Source of the DNA: Epithemia pelagica
Lineage: Eukaryota > Protista > Bacillariophyta
NCBI GenBank assembly: GCA_946965045.2
Contig: OX337232.1
Coordinates: 1,736,001-1,800,000 of the forward strand
Direction: 5' to 3'
Length of the DNA stretch: 64,000 bases
The position numbers and the translations under genes were made by a program. Every line of letters begins with the position of its first letter. Within the stretch, counting starts at the first letter, position 1. Of the stretch, positions 52,139 to 64,000 are shown one piece after another. Below the pieces are notes generated by a model. That model was not told the DNA's origin and did not search any database. It was given only the letters and a program-made list of their open reading frames with translations.

Positions 52139-52913
52139 ATGTCGGAGGCTAGTGAAGTCCAAGAGAAAGAACCACAGATCCGAGATTCTGCAAGCATCCG
52201 AAAAAATTCCAAAGAAGAAGACCGATCATCTTTGTCGGAATCATGCGTGCGACCTACCGATAGTTCGAAGCACGCGAATGTATCGTCATCGTCTTTTCGA
52301 AAGACGGAGAAGGAAAGAGAGTGGGTGGCAACTCCACTTCCAATGGACATTATTTGTGGAAGGGGTGCAAAAATGACTCATCCGGGAAATCGTCGCTTTC
52401 GAGATATTGTCTTGGCGCATCAAAGCGATTACCAAAAGGCCAAACGCAGAGAAGACAAGACTCGGATTACAGCTGATATCGTCAATTTACTCTTGGTTGG
52501 GGCCAAGCCAGCACGGTACGTCCGCTTCCCATTGTCATGCTCTTTGACTGACAAATTGAGCCATTGTTCCGTGATTTCTTGACACATCAGTCCCATCGTC
52601 ACCGTCGCTTGTCTGTAGATTTTTGTTGAAAGATAGTGAAACAGACCAGTGGTACAATGTGGGGACTGAATACGCAAAGGAAAAAGTGAGCCATGCCTTG
52701 CGGAGCCGACCCACTTCGGAGCGTAAAAAGCGGAGTGCCTCCAGTCATGGCAACCATGACAGTATCAACAAGAAAAGTCGAAAGAAAATGAAATGTCCCC
52801 CGGAACTGGAAGCCACAGTCAATCGCCTGATATCGGAACAACAACAGTTGTTGGAAGATATGATTCGAAGGGAAGTTCTGCCAACCATTGCTTCCAGTGC
52901 TGGAGGAAGATAA
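52139..52913 (+). CDS. DUF6824-type protein; intron 52516-52618
   Basis: DIICGRG…HPGNRRFRDIV…Y…R|FL…W…KEKVSHALR; the GT-AG intron restores the frame. Confidence 0.85.
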
Positions 52914-53512
52914 AAAGTATGACTGACAGTTCTGGTGAACGAGCTGTCAAAGGGTATGATTTGATCGTCAAAGAGGACGATAAAACGAAGTAGTCCTGAT
53001 AGTCTTTGACCGACCAAGTATTCTGGTTGCACAACTGAATCATCAGAAAGATAAATCGAAGCAGCACTAAGAGTTAATTGTCATCCAGGTTTGCATAAAT
53101 CGATATATGGGTTGATCTGGTCGCTGCATGCATGGCTGATTAGTGGACCTATCGATATGGTTTATGTTAGTGAACTGACCTGTCCGAGGAACGAAGTGTA
53201 TCAATTCTAAACAGATCACAATTGTTCATTTAATTTACATTCGTCCAAGTTGTCGCCTCATGTTGGACCACTAGTTCCATTACAAGTGGGAGAGTGCTGG
53301 ATTGTCTTTGTCAGAAACGCGACTGTGTATATCCCACTGGTTTTTTGGTATGCTCGAAAGATGTCCACGAATCCAAGAGAGTTTGACTATGCGTCGAGAA
53401 CAAACTTTTCTCGTTCTCCAGGCAAAACCCTTTCATAACATTAAAACAAGGAATGGCTAATTGCCTGAAATGGGGACAAATCCCCTCTGCACCAAATATT
53501 CCAGATCAACGG

Positions 53513-54544
53513 TTATTCCCTTCTGCCTTCTGGTACGGCCCATGGAGCCTGCATTTCTTTGTGACCACCGCCTGTATCTGATATATGGAGTTTTTCTGCT
53601 TCAATGTAAGCAGTCCTACCCATTTTCTTGGCAACTAATGCGCCACTTGGCTGATGCGTGATTGAAAGTATTCCACGTTTGATTTCCATTCGAATTCTGG
53701 GACGATCCTGACATACCAAGGGGAAGATGAGTTCCTTCGTATATGGCGGTGCCCACCACGGTGACGCTACAGCGCCTGAAGATTCCGAAATCTGTGTTCC
53801 GGGCCTTGCGGGTGCACAAAGATAGTTCAAACTACCAACAACTGAAGATATATCATCGACAAAGAAATTGAGCCAAACAGCAACCCCGACAACAGCAAGG
53901 CTGAGGAAAGCAACAAGAGATTTGGCGGCAAATGTCACCTTCCTCCTCTTCGATTCCAGCCGTGTTACTTTACTGCGAAGGCGTTCCGATTCCTCATGCT
54001 GTTCTATCAACAAACTTTTCATTTCCGCATATGTCGTGTCTTTGTCGTCCTCCAAACGTTTCTTTTCCTGTTGAAGGACAGAGTTTTTGCCCTCATATTG
54101 TCGGAAAAGTTCCATTATGGTTTCCTCCATTTCACCCTTTTGGCTTTCTAGAGTTTTGATTTTCCCTTCTAATGCCTGTGATTCCTTTTCCAGCAATTCC
54201 TTCAAGAGGTCATCGTCAACAACGGCACCATTCTGGACTCCGGGTAAATCTCTTAAGGCTTCTAACAGTTCTGATCCTCTTCGGTCGCTTACGCGCTGGC
54301 GCTTCAAATGACTTAGTCTTCTGTATTCCTCGAGCTTTCCACGGAGGCTTGACAACACTTCTTCCGTCTCTCCTTTCTCCTGCTCTATTTGTTTCAGTTT
54401 CTCATGGAAGTTACGAGAATCGAGGCTTTTGTCAATGACCACATTATCCGAAGAGAATGAAACACTGGTCTTTCGACGATTGTTGGGACTTGTCCCAACG
54501 GACTTTCGATGAGACTCCAAGTTGCTCACGTCCTTCATGACCAT
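53513..54544 (-). CDS. Coiled-coil + single TM + conserved C-terminal domain protein (paralog P1)
   Basis: Heptad-rich N-half, TM (LVAFLSLAVVGVAVWLNFF), then LCAPARPG…SPWWAP…C…PW. Confidence 0.85.
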   Translation of the reverse strand: MVMKDVSNLESHRKSVGTSPNNRRKTSVSFSSDNVVIDKSLDSRNFHEKLKQIEQEKGETEEVLSSLRGKLEEYRRLSHLKRQRVSDRRGSELLEALRDLPGVQNGAVVDDDLLKELLEKESQALEGKIKTLESQKGEMEETIMELFRQYEGKNSVLQQEKKRLEDDKDTTYAEMKSLLIEQHEESERLRSKVTRLESKRRKVTFAAKSLVAFLSLAVVGVAVWLNFFVDDISSVVGSLNYLCAPARPGTQISESSGAVASPWWAPPYTKELIFPLVCQDRPRIRMEIKRGILSITHQPSGALVAKKMGRTAYIEAEKLHISDTGGGHKEMQAPWAVPEGRRE

Positions 54545-55184
54545 TGTCAATTGTCGGTGGGAATTCAAATCGGACCTCTACTGATACTGGTTAATCGATT
54601 CCTCCGATCCTTGACGAGGTGAATGGGGGAATTCAGGTTAACCTCGCCCTCTCAACGAGGTTCAAGAAAAATTCAACAGGATTATCAAAATGCCACTTGT
54701 GACTTGGGTGAGATGTCCGAAGTCCGAAGTCAGCACAAGCAGTCTCGGGACTCGGGACTCCTCAGTTCCCGAATTTTACATCATAGCTGTCTAAAGATTT
54801 AAAACTTAGACGCGCTAGGGAGTGTGTCAAACACTTCAAACAAAAGAATGAGGAACAGTGGTGACGTTGCTCGTTTTCCACTTAGCAAATCATGATGTGA
54901 CAAGGGTGAACTGGCATTCAATGTTGTACATTTTGAACTAGAGTGTGATTTAGAGGCATACGTCGTCCTACTAAAAGATTCATACAACGATTGTCGCAGG
55001 ACAAAAGCCAAGATCCCAAAGACGCGTAAAAAAATCGCTCTTGGCGTGAAATCGCCAGTTGGAGAAGAATATTGGCAACCTGCCAATTTCCATCACAACA
55101 TTATTTGGAATCTCGGCCGAGGTGAATTGTGGATTGGAGCCTTGTTCTTCCTCGATCCTCGAAGTCTCACAATCTTGCGGTTCA

Positions 55185-56633
55185 ATGATGTCCGAAAGTG
55201 AGATTAGTGAAAAAATGAAGAGAACTAATATGGACGTGATGGAGCGTAGGTTTAAAAGCCTGGAAACGCTCCAGAACAACGAAACAGAACATGGTGCCGA
55301 GTCTGCTTCCGTTGAGGTATCCAATGTGCTTGAGCATCCACCAGCTCTTCAAAAAAGCATGGAACTGCGGCAGCAATACAGCCATTCTTTCACAAACAAG
55401 CTCCGAGAACGCACTCGTTTGAGTCAAACGGATTCTTCTGCAGTTCGTCATCGTGTAAGCCAAACGGATTCAACTACAGTTCGTCATCATCGTCTACCTT
55501 CGTTGGCCGAGCATTCTTCCTCTGATGGGAACGAGTGTGAGCAAGGGGAGAAGACAGATGTCAACAGAGCTCTGCTCGGTCTTCGTGGTATTCTTGAGGA
55601 ACAGAAACGACGTCACGCGATAAAGCGAAAGCGCCTGGTAGAAATCCGTGAAGCTAACGCTGTTGCTGAAAAAGGGCTTGTTGTTCCCGAAGCTGTTCGC
55701 CGAAGTGTGTGCTCCAGATCTGATGATGTTAGCACAATTACAGATCCAACTTTCTTTGAGTGCAGAGATGCTCCAGACTACCTCTCAGTTGGGTGGAAAG
55801 ATGAGACTGTGCTAGAAAACGACGACGAAACGGTTGACTTAGAAGGTGTCAAGGGGCCCAAGATCGATGCCTCTTTGTTCAAGGAAGACGGTGCCAGCAC
55901 AACTGCCACTTCTGACTTGTCCGATTCCAGCACGCGTGGGCTCTCCGAAGAGCAGTCTCGCCAGTCTCAAGCTTTGGAGGCTATGAAGGCTCGTGTTGAG
56001 GCTCTCGAGGAGGAAAAGATAGAACGTGACGAGTCTATTGCTTCCTTTCTAGCGAACTACGCGGACAAATCTGTTCAACTCCGTCGAATGGAAGCAGATA
56101 CTGATCACAAGCGAGCTGAATGCTCTGAAATCCAGTCTTTGGTCGGGGAGAAACGTCAAGAATCTGACACCTTGCGCGGTCGATTGACATCATTGGAAAA
56201 TCGCACAACCGCTGCAAAGATCTGGCGTCGTCTTATCTCGCTGAGTGTCCTTGTTCTTTGTGCATGTATTGCTATTGATCATATCGTTCTTCCTGCGGAT
56301 TTTTCGAAAAAGACACACACTGCATGGAATGGAATATGCGCACCAGTCAAGCCTGGAACCAAAGTTTCCGAAGGGATGGGCCCGTTGGAAGCACCTTGGT
56401 GGGCTCCAAGTGGGTATCTCAAGGTTCCTATGTATCACTTGTCTGGTTGCAGCAGCCGTCCAAGGACTCGCCTTGAGGTTATTCGCGGTATGCTTTATGT
56501 CACGTCGAACAACGGTTTCGAGAGCCTTATCAAAAAGCCAAGCAAGAGTGTTCATGCGGAAGCTGGTACAATCCATATTCTAGATCGATACGGAGCACAC
56601 GTCCAAGTAGATGCTCCCTGGGCGCTGCACTAG
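55185..56633 (+). CDS. Coiled-coil + single TM + conserved C-terminal domain protein (paralog P2)
   Basis: Coiled coils, TM (LISLSVLVLCACIAI), then ICAPVKPG…APWWAP…C…PW. Contains a 36-nt tandem duplication at 55422-55493. Confidence 0.85.
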   Translation: MMSESEISEKMKRTNMDVMERRFKSLETLQNNETEHGAESASVEVSNVLEHPPALQKSMELRQQYSHSFTNKLRERTRLSQTDSSAVRHRVSQTDSTTVRHHRLPSLAEHSSSDGNECEQGEKTDVNRALLGLRGILEEQKRRHAIKRKRLVEIREANAVAEKGLVVPEAVRRSVCSRSDDVSTITDPTFFECRDAPDYLSVGWKDETVLENDDETVDLEGVKGPKIDASLFKEDGASTTATSDLSDSSTRGLSEEQSRQSQALEAMKARVEALEEEKIERDESIASFLANYADKSVQLRRMEADTDHKRAECSEIQSLVGEKRQESDTLRGRLTSLENRTTAAKIWRRLISLSVLVLCACIAIDHIVLPADFSKKTHTAWNGICAPVKPGTKVSEGMGPLEAPWWAPSGYLKVPMYHLSGCSSRPRTRLEVIRGMLYVTSNNGFESLIKKPSKSVHAEAGTIHILDRYGAHVQVDAPWALH

Positions 56634-57728
56634 GTTTGTCTCCATTGATCGGGATGATTGCTTAACGGGACGCCACATTCAGACAATATGGAGAGTGAGA
56701 ACACGTCTTGATAAACATGAACTCTGCATGACGAAGGTACATGTCGTCTACCTTTATAGAGCACATACGATTGGCACATAAGAAACAGATAAAATCGCTG
56801 GAGAACTGATATTCTGAAGTTTAGGTTCGGCGCTTGATTCTTGCCGCAATAGATCGACCAGGGATTGGTCGACCATCCGTTGTCCCGAAGGAAATGGACA
56901 GAGTGCAAAGAGGCTAGAGGAGTACTGTACTTCTTTCTTCTATGTAGCTAACTGGTGGAACGCAAAAGGTGCGCTCTCAAGCTCTGGATTACACAATACC
57001 ACATACACATTGTACATGATGTGTCATTCGAAACTTGAAACGCATTCATTCTCTTGTCTCCGAGCCGCATCCCATTCTTTTTGGAGTAGAAGGTAGGAGT
57101 ATCTAAAGGGAATAGTCTATTCTTCCAGCTGCAGCGCCTACCCGCTAGGGTACGGTCGACCGACTGCCCTGGCGCCATTACTCTCGGAATCATGGAGCGG
57201 GGGGACAGCCCGCTTGTGACAAGGGGCCACATAGACGAACCGCTTTTCGGGCCCCACATCTAGCCCTCCCAACCACCTAATCATAGCGGACTCGAACCAT
57301 GGACACCAACCATACGGTGGACATGGACATGGGTATGCCTTCATCTTTGCGCGGGGGTGCCCACTGCCCCACCCCCCAAACTTTGAAGCGGGACACGAAC
57401 AAACGTACCGCCCAAGCGCAAGCGGTATTGATATTGATAGAGTTAAAAAACATATTTGCTGATAGTCTCGTAAACGCTGCAAGGAGTAGAGAGAGAATTT
57501 TTGTATGTAGATCCATCCCCCAGCGGGGGCGGCTACTTGTACGAGTGTCTAATTTCTTCTAGCCAAACCCTGAAAACCACCCCGCCAGAAAGTAAAGAGG
57601 AGTTCTTTTTCTTCATGGTCAGTCCGCACGCGTCTGTTGCGTGGACACGGAGAACGGAGACACACGGACTGCGTCTCGCTGCGAACTGCGCAACAAAAAA
57701 TGCAGATACGTGTACGCAGTGATTGACA

Positions 57729-60700
57729 ATGACATTCTTTCGTGGCAAATCCGCTGCTTCCCATGAGCGAGATCCTAAAGGTTACGGATCCAGGTCACAG
57801 AAGGCATTGAAGGCAACAGAAGCTACTCGAGCTTCTAGAAGAAGTAGAAACTCAGACGCAATGTCGGTGAATGAAAGGTTTCATGACGAGCATTCACCCA
57901 TCACAACGGATGAAGCAGATGAAATCGTAGACGATTCCAAGATTGCGGGTGTCGGACCTCTCATGGAGTACTCGGATACATCTGAGGAACAAGATCCTAT
58001 ACGACGGCGTCATAAACCGTCTTCGTCAAAAAATGGCTTGCGGAAGCAATTGTCTACCGAAAGCATGCGTGTAGTTCGCTTCAACAGTTCATTCTCGGAC
58101 GATGAGGAGGATGTACTTCGATCTGCCGATCGCATCCAGCCGCCAAACATGCACGAATCCATACCACCTCCTCCTCCACCTGATATTCGAACTTCCTCGA
58201 ACATCAATCATCGCCACCATTCTAACAGTTCATCATCACAGCCTATAGATAACAGTCAATCGCATTCTTTGGTACAGCAAAATCAACCCAAACGCAAGAC
58301 CCATCGGAAGCAGCATATTCATCCGAGCAAAAGTCCTGACTGGATGACGCAGCTTGCCTATTCGTTTCGCTCTCCCTCCCCTTTGACCACAAACAGGAAG
58401 CAACTTCAAGCCTCGTCTTCAAACCTCTCCTCTTCAAATAATATCGAATATCCACCTGGTATCACAAAAGATATGTTTCCCTCTGCTTTCACAGACTCCA
58501 TGCCTCCAAATGGTGTTAAATTGGATGCTGATACTCTCGACACGATAAGAACGTCAAATGCCTCTGTTGTGAGTGAGAATCAGCCAGAACGACCTAGTAA
58601 AAAGGATTCCGATTTAAGTTTCCAAGCAAGTGAAGCCAGCCCACTTTTGGGAGATTCTTTCTTGCCCTCCTTCGCCTCAGTGCGATCCACTGATACACCC
58701 AGTCGTCGTCGCCTGAACGCGACTCAAAATTACGTGGCGTTGGCCGCCTCGTTCTTGAGAGACTATGAGGGTGGACGGGCCCCAACGCTTAGCACTGATT
58801 TGGATGACGTGACCGATCGACAACTTCGTTTGTATGAGTACAAGTTTGGAGGGTATTCTTTCCAAGCAAGTATTATCCTTGCTTCTATTGCTATTTTTGC
58901 GTCCAGCATGTTGGAAGGATTCGACGTTCCCCAAGAGTACAAGCTCTACTTAACCGCTTTGAATCTGATTGGTTCGAGTGTCTTCATGGTGGATATTTGG
59001 TTTCGCTCTCAGCTTCGAGGCAATCCAGATCAGACTCAGCATACACGGACCAGTCGATCAGAACGCCTGGTGAAACCAGTCATTCTCTTCGCCATAATAC
59101 TGGCGGTTGAAAACATTGCCCGTGTTATCGTCACGCCTGACAACGACATTGTTCTGTTTTCTAGCCTCTTCAAGCCGCTCGTCCTTTTCTACACAAGTTC
59201 GAAAGCTAGGGATGCTCTCGAGGCTCTCAGAAGAATAATTCGAATTGTTGTACGTGTATTGGCCATGGAACTCTTGCTTATTCTCATGTTTGCGGCTGTG
59301 GCATGTCGACTCTTTCGCGAGTTCAACAACTTTGTGGATTTAAGTACAGCTTGGCTCTCGCTTTTTGAACTATCGACCACAGTCGTGAACCCCTCTATCT
59401 GGATGCCAATCTACCAAAATTCCCCGTACGCAGCAATTTTCTTCATGTCCTTTATTGTGATATCCGTCTTCTACTTGCATTCTCTGGTGCTCTCCGTTGT
59501 CTTTTCGACTTACATCCAAGCTGCCTCTGAGATTCATGAACGAGCGTCAGGAGATCGAGAAGATTCGATTCAAATGGCGTTCGTTGCCTTACAGCGCAAG
59601 GAGAGACGAAACGTCGTTGATGTTGATCTTTTGCGCGAAACGCTAAGAATTCTTCGTCCCCACTACAACGCGATGAAGATCAATGCCCTAGTGGAGATCG
59701 TAGACCCAACAGATCAAAGGACTGTGGATTTCGGAACCTTCCGTACCAAAATACGACAAGCCCTCAACGCATCAATTCGAACGGCCAGAAGTGCTACAGT
59801 GCTCTCCACATTGGTGGAACTTGTCGCCGTTGTTGTTGCGGTGTTCAACTTTGCGTATGTTATCATGGTCTCATCGAGATTCCACGCATCATGGTTCATC
59901 AACGTCCAAGAGACAGTTGGTTCTGTGATTACAGTTATTGCTGGGTTTGAGTTGTTGATCAGATTCAACCCGCTACGAATCCCAGACTTCACCCCACTGA
60001 CTCGTCTCAATGCGACCTTTGACGGTCTTGCTTTGATTGCTTGTATCACGTCACTTGTGGGCATTGTTTTCTATGCGGCTGGGTACGATCATGCAATAGA
60101 GTACATATTGATTGGTCGTGCACTGGACATGGTTCGGATAATGCGATTCTTTCAGATATTCCGGGATGTTGTGAGACGGAGTTCGGATGTCTTGCCTGCT
60201 TTAGCTGGACCGGTCATCTTGGTCGTAACCACTCTTCACATTTTTGTATACCTGGGTATGGCACTTTGGGGTGGGGCAGTGGAAGTTGGACAACACTTTG
60301 GCGAAATTACGTATCTTTACGATCTGAATAATTTCAACAGCTACGCCGAGGGTTTGGTCACAATGTTTCAGGTACTTGTCGTCAACGATTGGCATGCAAT
60401 TGCTGAAGTATTTCTTTTTGCTGAGCGTTGCGCAAGCCCCTTTATTGTTTACCCAGTTTTCATTCTTGGCAATATGATTGGTGTCTCCATTATGTTAAAC
60501 GTGATGACAGCTTTCTTTGTTGAAACTTTTGTCACAAAACTCGATGACGGGGCGAACAATCAAGCCGAGGGCACGACAACGGTGCAGAAAGACCGTGATT
60601 TCAACATCTTAACAGAAGGAAAGAAGAGTGTACGGAGGGTGGCGACAAAACCAGACCGGTCTCAAACTGACGAGAACCACGTATCCATCGATGGAGGCGC

Positions 60701-61190
60701 CGACGCTGACTCAGAAGCAAGCTCTGAAGATTTGTATGAGTTTGATGTTTACGAGCGAGAAGGATTCGATAAAATCATGGAGACCGTTGCTGGAAACGCA
60801 GAGGCCCATGAATTTGCGCAACACATATGTAACTACCTCGAAATATTCGAGAAACTCACACCTGGTCGCGAGAAGGTTGGATACCTCATCTGTGACCAGA
60901 AAACCCTTGAGCGTTTTGGAAACCGTCGCTTCCAGAGCATCGCTGCCGGATTCCTGTCTGAACAGGAACTCAATGAAACTGTGAGTGATATGCATGCTCA
61001 GTTGCTTGTTCTCTCGGCCAAAACTACGTATTCCAATGACAGGGCTGTTACTCGGACCTTCCCGCACAGCATTGATTCTGTGAGGGCGATAGAAATATCT
61101 GCGTCTATTCTGCGACGCCATCCTGCTGTCTCGCTGTTCGTGATCAGATTAAAAGATTCTTCAAGACCAGCACTTGAATCAAGCACGTAA
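57729..61190 (+). CDS. TPC: Two-pore channel (TPC)-like cation channel
   Basis: Two 6-TM repeats with pore motifs LFELSTTVVNPSIWMPIY and MFQVLVVNDW, an S4-like GRALDMVRIMRFF, and an EF-hand-like linker. Long disordered N-terminus. Confidence 0.88.
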   Translation: MTFFRGKSAASHERDPKGYGSRSQKALKATEATRASRRSRNSDAMSVNERFHDEHSPITTDEADEIVDDSKIAGVGPLMEYSDTSEEQDPIRRRHKPSSSKNGLRKQLSTESMRVVRFNSSFSDDEEDVLRSADRIQPPNMHESIPPPPPPDIRTSSNINHRHHSNSSSSQPIDNSQSHSLVQQNQPKRKTHRKQHIHPSKSPDWMTQLAYSFRSPSPLTTNRKQLQASSSNLSSSNNIEYPPGITKDMFPSAFTDSMPPNGVKLDADTLDTIRTSNASVVSENQPERPSKKDSDLSFQASEASPLLGDSFLPSFASVRSTDTPSRRRLNATQNYVALAASFLRDYEGGRAPTLSTDLDDVTDRQLRLYEYKFGGYSFQASIILASIAIFASSMLEGFDVPQEYKLYLTALNLIGSSVFMVDIWFRSQLRGNPDQTQHTRTSRSERLVKPVILFAIILAVENIARVIVTPDNDIVLFSSLFKPLVLFYTSSKARDALEALRRIIRIVVRVLAMELLLILMFAAVACRLFREFNNFVDLSTAWLSLFELSTTVVNPSIWMPIYQNSPYAAIFFMSFIVISVFYLHSLVLSVVFSTYIQAASEIHERASGDREDSIQMAFVALQRKERRNVVDVDLLRETLRILRPHYNAMKINALVEIVDPTDQRTVDFGTFRTKIRQALNASIRTARSATVLSTLVELVAVVVAVFNFAYVIMVSSRFHASWFINVQETVGSVITVIAGFELLIRFNPLRIPDFTPLTRLNATFDGLALIACITSLVGIVFYAAGYDHAIEYILIGRALDMVRIMRFFQIFRDVVRRSSDVLPALAGPVILVVTTLHIFVYLGMALWGGAVEVGQHFGEITYLYDLNNFNSYAEGLVTMFQVLVVNDWHAIAEVFLFAERCASPFIVYPVFILGNMIGVSIMLNVMTAFFVETFVTKLDDGANNQAEGTTTVQKDRDFNILTEGKKSVRRVATKPDRSQTDENHVSIDGGADADSEASSEDLYEFDVYEREGFDKIMETVAGNAEAHEFAQHICNYLEIFEKLTPGREKVGYLICDQKTLERFGNRRFQSIAAGFLSEQELNETVSDMHAQLLVLSAKTTYSNDRAVTRTFPHSIDSVRAIEISASILRRHPAVSLFVIRLKDSSRPALESST

Positions 61191-62098
61191 ATGGTGATAG
61201 GAATCTATCGTCTTTAAGTTGAATGTGAATAACCCAAATCACGATTATGTGAAGTGCTGCTGTCGTACTGAAATGAGGAGAATTTAGGAGATGAAAATAG
61301 AAACGGGATCTGTTCCAAGTCAACCTGAGATTTCGCTTTACTGCCTGTCTGATTTCTGGGATCCTTGTGCTTGGTGTAAAGTGTCACCGTAGGAGTTACT
61401 CCCAGCGGGATTGTTTCGGAGGTAGAATTACCCTCATATCTACCCCTTCTGGGGAGTAACGTAGGAGTGCATCGCTCGTCATCTACTCCTCATCTCACAG
61501 GCAAAATCACACGGCGCATACTCCCTACAAAATGCACTTGTACCCAAAGACACAGACGATGCAGAAAAAACTATGCATCGAATCAGATATACACCTTGGG
61601 AACCTTGAACATGGATACTAGCTGAACGATTGGTTTCTTCTGTTGTGGTAGCCTATGTTCATCTTGGTTAAGTTGAGCGCTAGCGCCCCAAACCAGTTCA
61701 TGAATACGTCGTCGAAGTTTCTGTGACAGTGACGGATACGAAAATACGAAGAGTGTCCCCGGACCCCGGACAAGAAGCATCGCGCTATCGACTTCGTGAT
61801 CTTCGACTAATACAAAGCTACACGTACCATCAAAACCTTACACAATATAATATTCAACTTCACGCGTCGATCAGTTGCACATTGATAGTCACCTCGCCTC
61901 GAACGACAACAACGGGACAATTTTGTGAACAAACAAGTACTAATAATTTCTAATGAAAATCAACCTACACAGACGAGTTCCCCTGTGGTGAAAAAGGGGG
62001 GATGAAGAGTTAGTTTCTCAATTGCTTGTTTCCCATTTAGCAAGCGTACGAAAACGCCATCACGTACCAAGTCGGCTGACATGTCAGCATAACTCATC

Positions 62099-64000
62099 CT
62101 AGGGTAAACGAAGGCGTCCACTGTCACCTTCATCTCGACCATCGTAGTCTCCCCAGGGTAAGTCAACCTCGTGCCATCCATTTGAATTGAACGTTAGAAT
62201 GTTGGACAAAGTGACGTATGCAAATCTCGCAGGATACCTGCGGATCTTCTCCACCGGGGCGACATGCGTTGAAGCTGTTGCTCCCGTATCAACTTCTGTA
62301 ATAAAGAAGTTCCCTTCTTTAACCTCCAATCGGATCTGGGGAACATCACGACAAATGCTCTCATAAACCGTGCTTTTGAAGTAGGTGGGAACCCAGAATG
62401 GAGCAGCATGAACACCGCTTTGCTCTGTGATTCTCGCCCCCGGCAATGCTGGAGAACACATTATGTTGTACGGTGTCATGGACGATTCCCATCCACGAAC
62501 AAGGTATACCATAGATGTGACCATACATCCGAAGAATAGTGTACGGGCAAGGAAAATGATAGTCGCCCATGTTACGCTGTTCTTCCTTTCGACAGCAAGC
62601 CTCAAGCGCACCATCTCTTCGTACTGAGAGCCAAGAACATCATTCATTTTCCTGAACAAAGAGTCCTCTGGACGATACACGGTCGTGGTTTTTCGATCCT
62701 TTGATCTGGAGTTGGCTTCTTTTTCGCTGGCGATCTCTGACAACACTGCGTTTGACTGTGCATCAAGGAAGCCAAAAATACCACGAAGCTGAGTGAGCTT
62801 ACCAAGCATAGTTCGTGCACTTATCGAGTTCGTCGTCTTCATGTCTTCGGAGCCTCGAGAACTCGTTTGAGATGGGTCCGTAGCCATCTCACCTGCCGTG
62901 GATCGGAGATTGCTTAGGCCTGTTTCTGCGAGCCTTAGCCGCGTTTCCAACTCCTCAACACCGCCACACCCATGCTCCTTTAATTTGGTAACTTTTGAAC
63001 GGACAAGCTGAGCCTGAACTTCCTGAAGTCGGATGAGCTCCAAAAGACAGGCAGATGTGTTCGATCTCTCTTCCAGAACCTCCTGGCGATCAACCGTCTT
63101 CAGACACTCATCCTCGGAACTTTCGGACACATCAGACTTTTCGGGTGTAACAGAATTCACCTGTGCTTGAAGAAAGCCGATGAGACCACGCAACTGTTTC
63201 AATTTCGCTTCACCAGCGTTTGCGTTGGGGTTTTGCGGTCCTTCAAACTCCGAGCGAAGTGTACTAAGCGCAGACCCTGCTAGCTTTAGCCTTGTTTCCA
63301 TTTCCTCCACCCCAATGCTACTGTTCTTCAGATTATTGACCTTTGATTGGACAAGCTCTGCTTCCTCTTGAACAACGATGATCTCTGCCAAAACAGATGC
63401 AGCTCGCTTTTTCTCTTGGTCCAACACTTCGTCGTCCGGCATAGCAGCGTTGACCTGCGCTGAAAGAAAACCAATAATTCCTCTTAGCTGGTTCACCTTT
63501 GAATCCCTTTGGGCAACATGCGCGGGAGTAATTGCATTGGCATCGGTTACATCCCCTTTTCCTTCAATTGCACGAACAATGCCCTCGAACTCATCTCTAA
63601 TCTCTGAAAGGGCGGTATCGGCGAGTCGAAATCGTGTCTCCATCTCTTTGATTCCGTCGCCTTTTCGCGCTTTTAATTCAGAGAGTTTTCCCCGCACCGG
63701 TTGGGTTTCCTCTTGTAGACTAACAATTTTCGACAAGCACTCTCGTATTTTACTTTTCTCGTTCTCTGTCAGGGAGCACACTTCTGACTTCTTCTTGGGT
63801 GCGGCGTCATCTGATACCGCAGCGTCCAATTGTGCTCTTAGGAAGCAAATGATCCCTCGGAGCCTGTTTACCTTCGCAAGATTATTCCGTGTATTGGAGA
63901 CTTGCACAGGTTCATCGACATTTTGAGATTGTGTACGTCCCTTTTCGACACTCTCCTCACATTCTAGGCGAAGATCTCGCAACGCAACTTCAGCAAGCCT
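62099..64000 (-). CDS. 5'-truncated repeat-containing coiled-coil + TM + conserved C-terminal domain protein (paralog P3)
   Basis: Frame is open to the window edge; internal ~85-105-aa repeats; TM; MCSPALPG…APFWVP…C…PW. Confidence 0.85.
   Translation of the reverse strand, partial: RLAEVALRDLRLECEESVEKGRTQSQNVDEPVQVSNTRNNLAKVNRLRGIICFLRAQLDAAVSDDAAPKKKSEVCSLTENEKSKIRECLSKIVSLQEETQPVRGKLSELKARKGDGIKEMETRFRLADTALSEIRDEFEGIVRAIEGKGDVTDANAITPAHVAQRDSKVNQLRGIIGFLSAQVNAAMPDDEVLDQEKKRAASVLAEIIVVQEEAELVQSKVNNLKNSSIGVEEMETRLKLAGSALSTLRSEFEGPQNPNANAGEAKLKQLRGLIGFLQAQVNSVTPEKSDVSESSEDECLKTVDRQEVLEERSNTSACLLELIRLQEVQAQLVRSKVTKLKEHGCGGVEELETRLRLAETGLSNLRSTAGEMATDPSQTSSRGSEDMKTTNSISARTMLGKLTQLRGIFGFLDAQSNAVLSEIASEKEANSRSKDRKTTTVYRPEDSLFRKMNDVLGSQYEEMVRLRLAVERKNSVTWATIIFLARTLFFGCMVTSMVYLVRGWESSMTPYNIMCSPALPGARITEQSGVHAAPFWVPTYFKSTVYESICRDVPQIRLEVKEGNFFITEVDTGATASTHVAPVEKIRRYPARFAYVTLSNILTFNSNGWHEVDLPWGDYDGRDEGDSGRLRLP

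Follow-up and report, generated by a model that had tools for sequence, protein, structure and literature searches.

The stretch of DNA analysed here (hereafter the window) comprises 64,000 nucleotides of contig OX337232.1 of the diatom Epithemia pelagica. Towards its end it contains three related protein-coding genes, P1, P2 and P3: P1 and P2 are arranged head-to-head, and P3 lies on the far side of a channel gene and runs past the end of the window (Table 1). The positions at which an earlier interpretation, made from the letters alone (the sequence-only reading), had placed the three open reading frames (ORFs) agree with the ORF list. Public data include a protein identical to P1 (P0001) and a near-identical counterpart of P2 (P0004, 481 amino acids, aa), while the full ORF of P3 encodes 1895 aa (L006:1100-6787). 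All three proteins end in the same kind of tail, in which one transmembrane (TM) helix leads into a domain of about 105 aa. The tail represents a domain family that is spread across the diatoms and as yet undescribed, in an architecture of a known kind; its fold lacks a clear relative.

The similarity among the three tails is far beyond chance. Pairwise BLASTP comparisons, covering the TM helix and the C-terminal domain, resulted in E values of 5e-36 for P1 and P2 (35% identity across 237 aa), 3e-26 for P1 and P3, and 4e-16 for P2 and P3; the common C-terminal domain and the mutual similarity claimed in the sequence-only reading were thus recovered by a formal comparison. A three-way alignment also reproduced the consensus proposed there: C-[AS]-P-x-x-P-G, P-[WF]-W-[AV]-P, a lysine, the second cysteine, R-[LM]-E-[IV], a glycine and the final PW. 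The two cysteines, described as invariant, retained this status over a family alignment of 103 sequences, most of which are 25-35% identical to P1. In this alignment C12, C47 and W104 are the sole invariant positions, and P14, P17, A30, P31, W33, P35, K39 and P103 are conserved at 90% or more. The description of the N-terminal halves as unrelated coiled coils had to be revised on two points: upstream of the TM helix, a further stretch of approximately 120 aa is similar between P1 and P2 by BLASTP, and the N-terminal part of P3 consists of 12 tandem repeats of approximately 134 aa instead of a plain coiled coil.

The earlier statement that no known domain could be recognised in the tail was borne out, since searches of Pfam, NCBIfam and PDB sequences returned no meaningful match for the proteins, for any of the 103 domain sequences or for the domain profile. 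An AlphaFold2 model of the P1 domain (m18c48a0b2c05), based on the 103-row alignment, reached a predicted local distance difference test (pLDDT) value of 89 and a predicted template modelling (pTM) score of 0.77. The modelled domain starts with a short membrane-exit helix, followed by the CAPxxPG and PWWAP loops, a helix ending at the second cysteine, and finally a six-stranded beta meander leading to the final PW. As a clear structural match we required Z>=8 or a Foldseek E<=1e-3 across the domain, Z values below 8 being the stated noise range of the tool. Foldseek searches of the model against the PDB returned nothing at E<=1e-3 (best 0.058). A wide search with VIA-align, which is independent of Foldseek, gave a best Z of 6.0 (root-mean-square deviation 2.2 over 62 residues) for 2yms, a self-assembling two-blade propeller fragment, followed by WD40 or BamB blades, bulb-type lectins and RSL/BambL lectins at Z 4-5.6. 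The shape search of the ESM Atlas reached a best template modelling score (TM-score) of 0.51, for a B_lectin receptor-kinase cluster, and its feature search produced no usable match. Membership of the beta-propeller or lectin folds (PQQ/BamB-like, RSL, B_lectin) was therefore rejected, as all these values lie in the noise; modelling followed by Foldseek, as proposed with the sequence-only reading, yielded a confident model without a clear structural relative.

To determine the extent of the family, a profile of five domain sequences was run exhaustively with HMMER against 1.84 billion cluster representatives. In total 215 proteins matched at E<=1e-3, of which 77 at E<=1e-10. One of the matches, P0110, was dropped as spurious due to its repeat-rich, low-complexity composition and its seven partial matches; leaving this protein out, the domain is C-terminal in all true matches listed. 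A word-indexed protein search was insensitive, with two matches for P1 and five for a full-length alignment of 47 sequences, the latter number being low because coiled-coil words swamped the query. Every member with an organism name is a diatom, and both pennate and centric species are represented: Epithemia clementina, Entomoneis paludosa, Entomoneis sp. CCMP467, Grammatophora oceanica, Fragilaria crotonensis and the centric Stephanopyxis turris. At their source, the Grammatophora oceanica protein is labelled “Uncharacterized protein” (UniRef) and that of Fragilaria crotonensis “hypothetical protein”. Because several named members come from MMETSP transcriptomes, the genes of this family are expressed. 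In the literature found, which included searches on KASH and the LINC complex (linker of nucleoskeleton and cytoskeleton) and on tail-anchored nuclear-envelope proteins, the family is undescribed, and neither the motif strings nor three accessions gave a match.

The genome itself (60.5 Mb in 23 contigs) was searched with the P1 domain and the family profile as queries. Apart from P1, P2 and P3, the searches identified P4 and one gene on contig C10, which brings the members that look intact to five, as well as one fragment on contig C17. P4 is located on the same contig as the window, 640 kb away (L007:1369-7482, minus strand; G000:C5 ~2,436,700-2,442,850), and has an open frame of approximately 2037 aa, in which a PDEase_I domain (PF00233; 3'5'-cyclic-nucleotide phosphodiesterase, HD-type catalytic domain; 74.7 bits, E 1.2e-20, above the cut-off) is followed by a coiled coil and then by the TM helix with the shared domain. 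The phosphodiesterase domain of P4 carries long Ser/Pro-rich insertions. A fusion of PDEase_I to the shared domain recurs in at least two other clusters (the orthologous P0011 and P0077), and appears from these sequences to represent a conserved membrane-anchored diatom phosphodiesterase. In the gene on C10 (L018:554-1887, plus strand; G000:C10 ~2,733,000-2,734,350) the domain is split across two overlapping frames directly past CSPxxPG, by a short intron or a frameshift, and was read as separate ORFs; its N-terminal part is Ser/Thr-rich, without an obvious coiled coil. The C17 fragment (L005:1183-1623, plus strand; G000:C17 ~2,890,200-2,890,650) is a truncated copy of the end of P4, which retains the juxtamembrane helix, the TM helix and 35 residues from the start of the domain before diverging into a stop. 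Its overlap of approximately 110 aa with the P4 tail reads identical, so that a pseudogene or a recent duplication of a fragment seems likely.

Pfam scans of the larger members revealed four recurring kinds of N-terminus: PDEase_I, BSD (P0112, P0129, P0136, P0134, P0117 and P0078), repeat giants (P3, P0005 and P0008) and plain coiled coils. The sequence-only reading had proposed a system of three genes; what was found instead is a domain family spread across the diatoms, with 215 cluster representatives, that is also carried by PDEase_I and BSD proteins. P1 shows weak SMC/Rad50-type coiled-coil matches at aa 45-202. The 12 repeats of P3 were counted with a repeat hidden Markov model (HMM), and numbers differ among its relatives: 18 were counted in the Epithemia orthologue, 22 in a protein of 2723 aa from another assembly, and 11 in the public version of P3 (P0003, 1761 aa). 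Three consecutive 134-aa repeats of P3, at residues 781-1173 just past the window end, are identical or almost identical; together with the difference of exactly one repeat between P3 and P0003, this points to copy-number polymorphism or to collapse or expansion in an assembly. Two successive repeats were modelled with AlphaFold2 (pLDDT 82), with three helices resulting per repeat, and locally the model is matched best in Foldseek by designed antiparallel three-helix bundles (TM-score 0.83 by target). The Foldseek rows for spectrin repeats were not significant (E 0.6-0.7), and a Pfam scan of full-length P3 returned no family, spectrin (PF00435) included. Because the repeats are modelled as three-helix bundles but these spectrin rows lack significance, P3 is, as far as the model goes, spectrin-like in form only.

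Exactly one TM segment, upstream of the domain, was present in all 88 members that could be analysed, and the median distance from this segment to the first cysteine is 10 residues. The median length of the hydrophobic span is 20 residues, with a mean of 3.3 Lys plus Arg in the 15 residues upstream of it compared to 0.9 downstream. Because the phosphodiesterase, BSD and coiled-coil parts belong to cytosolic types, the flanks of the TM helix follow the positive-inside pattern and two cysteines are invariant, we infer that the N-terminus is cytosolic and the domain luminal or extracellular; the two invariant cysteines probably form a structural disulfide. The architecture of a cytosolic rod, one TM helix and a small exoplasmic domain, as anticipated in the sequence-only reading, is thereby supported by hydropathy and charge bias, its topology being deduced. 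The tail-anchored protein class was considered and rejected, as 110-150 residues follow the TM helix, whereas in that class, whose members are inserted post-translationally, the single TM segment lies within approximately 30 residues of the C-terminus. The commonest ending is two residues past the final PW (44 of 106 sequences), and tails reach up to 24 residues.

In a FastTree phylogeny of the domain, which is of low resolution, P1, P2 and P3 each group with their own orthologues from other assemblies, and P4 groups with another phosphodiesterase fusion. Since each of the three has its own orthologues in other diatoms, P1, P2 and P3 would on this evidence be old paralogues. In another diatom assembly (L020), a P1 orthologue (58% identical) and a gene of the P2 type (domain E 5.5e-30) stand head-to-head. 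The P2-type gene is adjoined by an Ion_trans channel gene (L020:2696-6298), and the P1 orthologue has a DUF6824 gene on its other side; this order of DUF6824, P1, P2 and channel mirrors window positions 52139-61190. A separate PDEase_I gene of 676 aa without the shared domain (L020:18154-20184, minus strand) is located approximately 7 kb from this P1 orthologue. In the same assembly and on the same contig, the giant P3-type orthologue lies approximately 190 kb away from the P1/P2 pair, and in two other diatoms no additional family member is present within 10 kb either side of the giant orthologues. For these reasons the conserved unit comprises P1 and P2, in divergent orientation next to the channel gene, and not all three genes: of the three-gene cluster described earlier, the head-to-head pair beside the channel is upheld by synteny, but the P3 type lies apart from it in the other assembly.

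Contigs of run X6 span P1 (53300-54634) and P2 (55210-56776), skip the intergenic positions 54635-55209 and show no joints across P1; in X3 and X4, which are DNA-like runs, P1, P2 and the region between them are all covered. The X6 coverage over P1 and P2 looks like RNA without introns, the type of X6 not being on record and its contigs being unable to fix the transcript ends. The 3' end of P1 is also matched by a contig from a marine metatranscriptome. At positions 54877 and 55149, within the P1/P2 intergenic region, the X3 and X4 contigs are shorter than the window by 13 and 7 bases, and approximately ten single-base differences were observed over 53513-56755; these differences are probably allelic or strain variation.

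Table 1. Positions of the three family members, their TM helices and C-terminal domains, and the neighbouring features in the window.
Feature	Position	Strand	Description
P1	53513..54544	-	ORF, 343 aa from first ATG, stop codon counted; cytosolic-type coiled-coil N-terminal part, one TM helix, C-terminal domain
P1 TM helix, aa 211-229	53858..53914	-	Hydropathy peak 2.36 at residue 211; KRRK on N-side, DD on C-side
P1 C-terminal domain, aa 232-343	53516..53851	-	CAPxxPG, PWWAP, second Cys and final PW; family alignments and AlphaFold2 model
P1/P2 divergent intergenic region, 640 bp	54545..55184	.	Presumed shared promoter region
P2	55185..56633	+	ORF, 482 aa, stop counted; in-frame ATGs at 55185, 55188 and 55215, start codon uncertain
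P2 TM helix, ~aa 350-367	56232..56285	+	Sequence; hydropathy of its public counterpart P0004
P2 C-terminal domain, aa 373-482	56301..56630	+	Alignments; domain HMM score 98 bits
P3, C-terminal 633 aa	62099..64000	-	Gene runs past window end; last four to five of 12 helical repeats, TM helix and domain
P3 TM helix	62498..62569	-	Sequence; hydropathy of P0003
P3 C-terminal domain, 130 aa	62102..62491	-	10-aa insertion, 18-aa tail past final PW; domain HMM score 94 bits
Channel gene, 1155-aa ORF, non-member	57723..61190	+	Pfam PF00520 (Ion_trans) 4e-22, two stretches
DUF6824 small ORF	52139..52582	+	DUF6824 domain, E 4.6e-13

The P1/P2 pair is flanked by the DUF6824 ORF and by the channel gene, which is not a family member (Table 1). 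The two Ion_trans stretches of the channel ORF are consistent with a two-pore-type cation channel, and its N-terminal 350 residues form a long region of low complexity.

Because one and the same tail, a TM helix plus an exoplasmic domain, is common to unrelated cytosolic parts, the reading we lean towards is that it is a diatom-specific module for membrane anchoring and targeting, which we hold to be somewhat probable. According to this reading, a single signal-anchor TM helix would be followed, after approximately 10 residues, by a compact domain of about 105 aa with two helices and mostly beta-strand thereafter. The domain would reside in the lumen of an endomembrane or outside the cell, probably stapled by a disulfide, and the N-terminal part would stay in the cytosol. 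In the course of evolution the module may have been joined to giant rods of three-helix bundles (P3), to coiled coils (P1 and P2), to a phosphodiesterase (P4) and to BSD proteins. Its most likely job would then be to fix these varied proteins to one particular membrane, through docking to a luminal partner, through self-assembly or through both, following the logic of the KASH tail of the LINC complex. As to the compartment, the shortness of the TM spans speaks weakly for the endoplasmic reticulum (ER), the nuclear envelope or the chloroplast ER. A more specific form of this idea, in which the domain acts as the luminal adaptor of a diatom-specific trans-membrane bridge that recruits rods, coiled-coil adaptors and phosphodiesterase to one membrane face, is possible but doubtful; such a bridge could be LINC-type, with the folded domain taking the place of the KASH peptide and engaging SUN proteins, or link the cytoskeleton to the lumen of the silica deposition vesicle (SDV).

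Several points weigh against the anchoring and targeting reading. The label “lineage-specific”, already used in the sequence-only reading, agrees with the fact that all named members are diatoms, but it is based on nine named members, the majority of the 215 clusters lacking an organism name. The rule that assigns membranes by TM length derives from fungal and vertebrate proteins, and the argument built on it is weak. Finally, the stretch past the final PW varies from 2 to 24 residues, which speaks against a fixed free C-terminus of the KASH type.

The last point also weighs against one of the alternatives, a true LINC-type bridge, in which the domain would bind SUN proteins of the inner nuclear membrane from within the lumen of the perinuclear space or chloroplast ER, so that the family would be the diatom replacement for KASH, with P3 as a nesprin analogue positioning the nucleus. 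Three SUN-domain genes are present in the genome, no diatom KASH protein is described in the literature found, and the short TM spans, the varied cytosolic N-termini on a common TM-plus-luminal tail and a giant member made of tandem three-helix bundles all fit the KASH pattern. However, instead of a short peptide the luminal part comprises 105-150 aa with a predicted fold, and it ends in a variable tail without a PPPX or VVPT-type terminus. Three of 47 members have sub-threshold matches to yeast MPS2, a SUN-binding protein of the spindle-pole body, which is a lead rather than evidence, given that the match is limited to the coiled coil and TM helix and reaches 24.1 bits against a cut-off of 28 bits. 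A LINC-type bridge is considered unlikely.

A link between the cytoskeleton and the cell wall or SDV would have the domain facing the SDV lumen or the exterior, binding glycans or matrix in a lectin-like manner, with the rods coupling to the cytoskeleton or to cyclic AMP or cyclic GMP (cAMP/cGMP) signalling. The diatom identity of all named members, one centric species included, and the Trp-rich conserved loops would suit such a function, as would the weak resemblance to the two-blade propeller lectins RSL and BambL (Z 4.1-4.5), to bulb-type lectins (Z ~5) and to the Atlas cluster (TM-score 0.51), although every structural match falls in the noise range of the tool, with Z below 8. Moreover, TM spans with a median of 20 aa suit early-secretory membranes over the plasma membrane, and no silica-related motifs were seen, which leaves a wall or SDV link rather improbable. 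The domain could also be a passive luminal stopper or an oligomerisation knob without a specific partner, a disulfide-stapled unit that secures the TM helix or self-assembles, e.g. into a propeller-like ring, to bundle the coiled coils. Its best structural neighbour, 2yms (Z 6.0), does self-assemble into a propeller, the domain sits within approximately 10 residues of the membrane, and the cytosolic coiled coils are likely to oligomerise. Nevertheless, the 2yms match is weak, and the strong retention of the surface-type motifs CAPxxPG, PWWAP and final PW across 103 sequences of approximately 30% identity suggests a specific interaction; we regard a purely passive role as very improbable.

The tail is relevant in two respects. 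As a new domain family with a confident model and many sequences, it is ready for curation in Pfam/InterPro. In addition, a module that would place rods of up to 2700 aa, coiled coils and a cyclic-nucleotide phosphodiesterase on one membrane offers a taggable handle on the coupling of cytoskeleton and membranes in diatoms, whose links from the cytoskeleton to nuclear envelope, chloroplast ER or SDV are largely uncharacterised.

Several known systems resemble parts of this family. The weak nearest neighbours of the beta meander (residues 23-104) are two-blade propeller fragments and lectins (2yms, RSL, BambL) and bulb-type lectins, but with Z <=6.0, a Foldseek E >=0.06 (best 0.058) and 10-15% identity they provide no evidence for homology or sugar binding. 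The P3 repeats, predicted to be tandem antiparallel three-helix bundles, are comparable to the spectrin repeats of nesprins and alpha-actinin; spectrin membership (PF00435) was rejected, as there is no Pfam match and the period is approximately 134 aa compared to approximately 106 aa. Yeast Mps2 (PF17060) likewise combines a cytosolic coiled coil with one TM helix near the C-terminus and a short luminal end. However, the weak matches skip the conserved domain of the diatom proteins and most probably reflect a shared coiled-coil-plus-TM composition only: the best, P0089, stays below the curated cut-off, and P1 has none, so that membership was rejected here as well.

KASH proteins (nesprins, KASH5 and the plant WIP/SINE proteins) also place a common TM helix and luminal tail on unrelated cytosolic N-termini, with the N-terminus cytosolic and the C-terminus luminal, and include a giant member of tandem three-helix bundles and a conserved luminal cysteine. 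They differ from the diatom proteins in that their luminal part is a peptide of approximately 30 (at most approximately 60) aa ending in a fixed PPPX or VVPT-type terminus, instead of a folded, beta-rich domain, and no profile match to KASH (PF10541) was obtained for P1-P3 or, at E<=1, for the 103 domain sequences. The diatom module resembles KASH in its logic and is not a member of it, and SUN binding is hypothetical. The sequence-only reading had likened the proteins to golgin- or nesprin-like tethers, of which the nesprin layout, with tandem predicted three-helix bundles, a TM helix and a luminal tail, holds for P3. Golgins anchored at their C-terminus (giantin, golgin-84 and CASP) share the long cytosolic rod and the single C-terminal TM helix, but have almost no luminal extension, whereas the diatom family is defined by its conserved, folded luminal domain.

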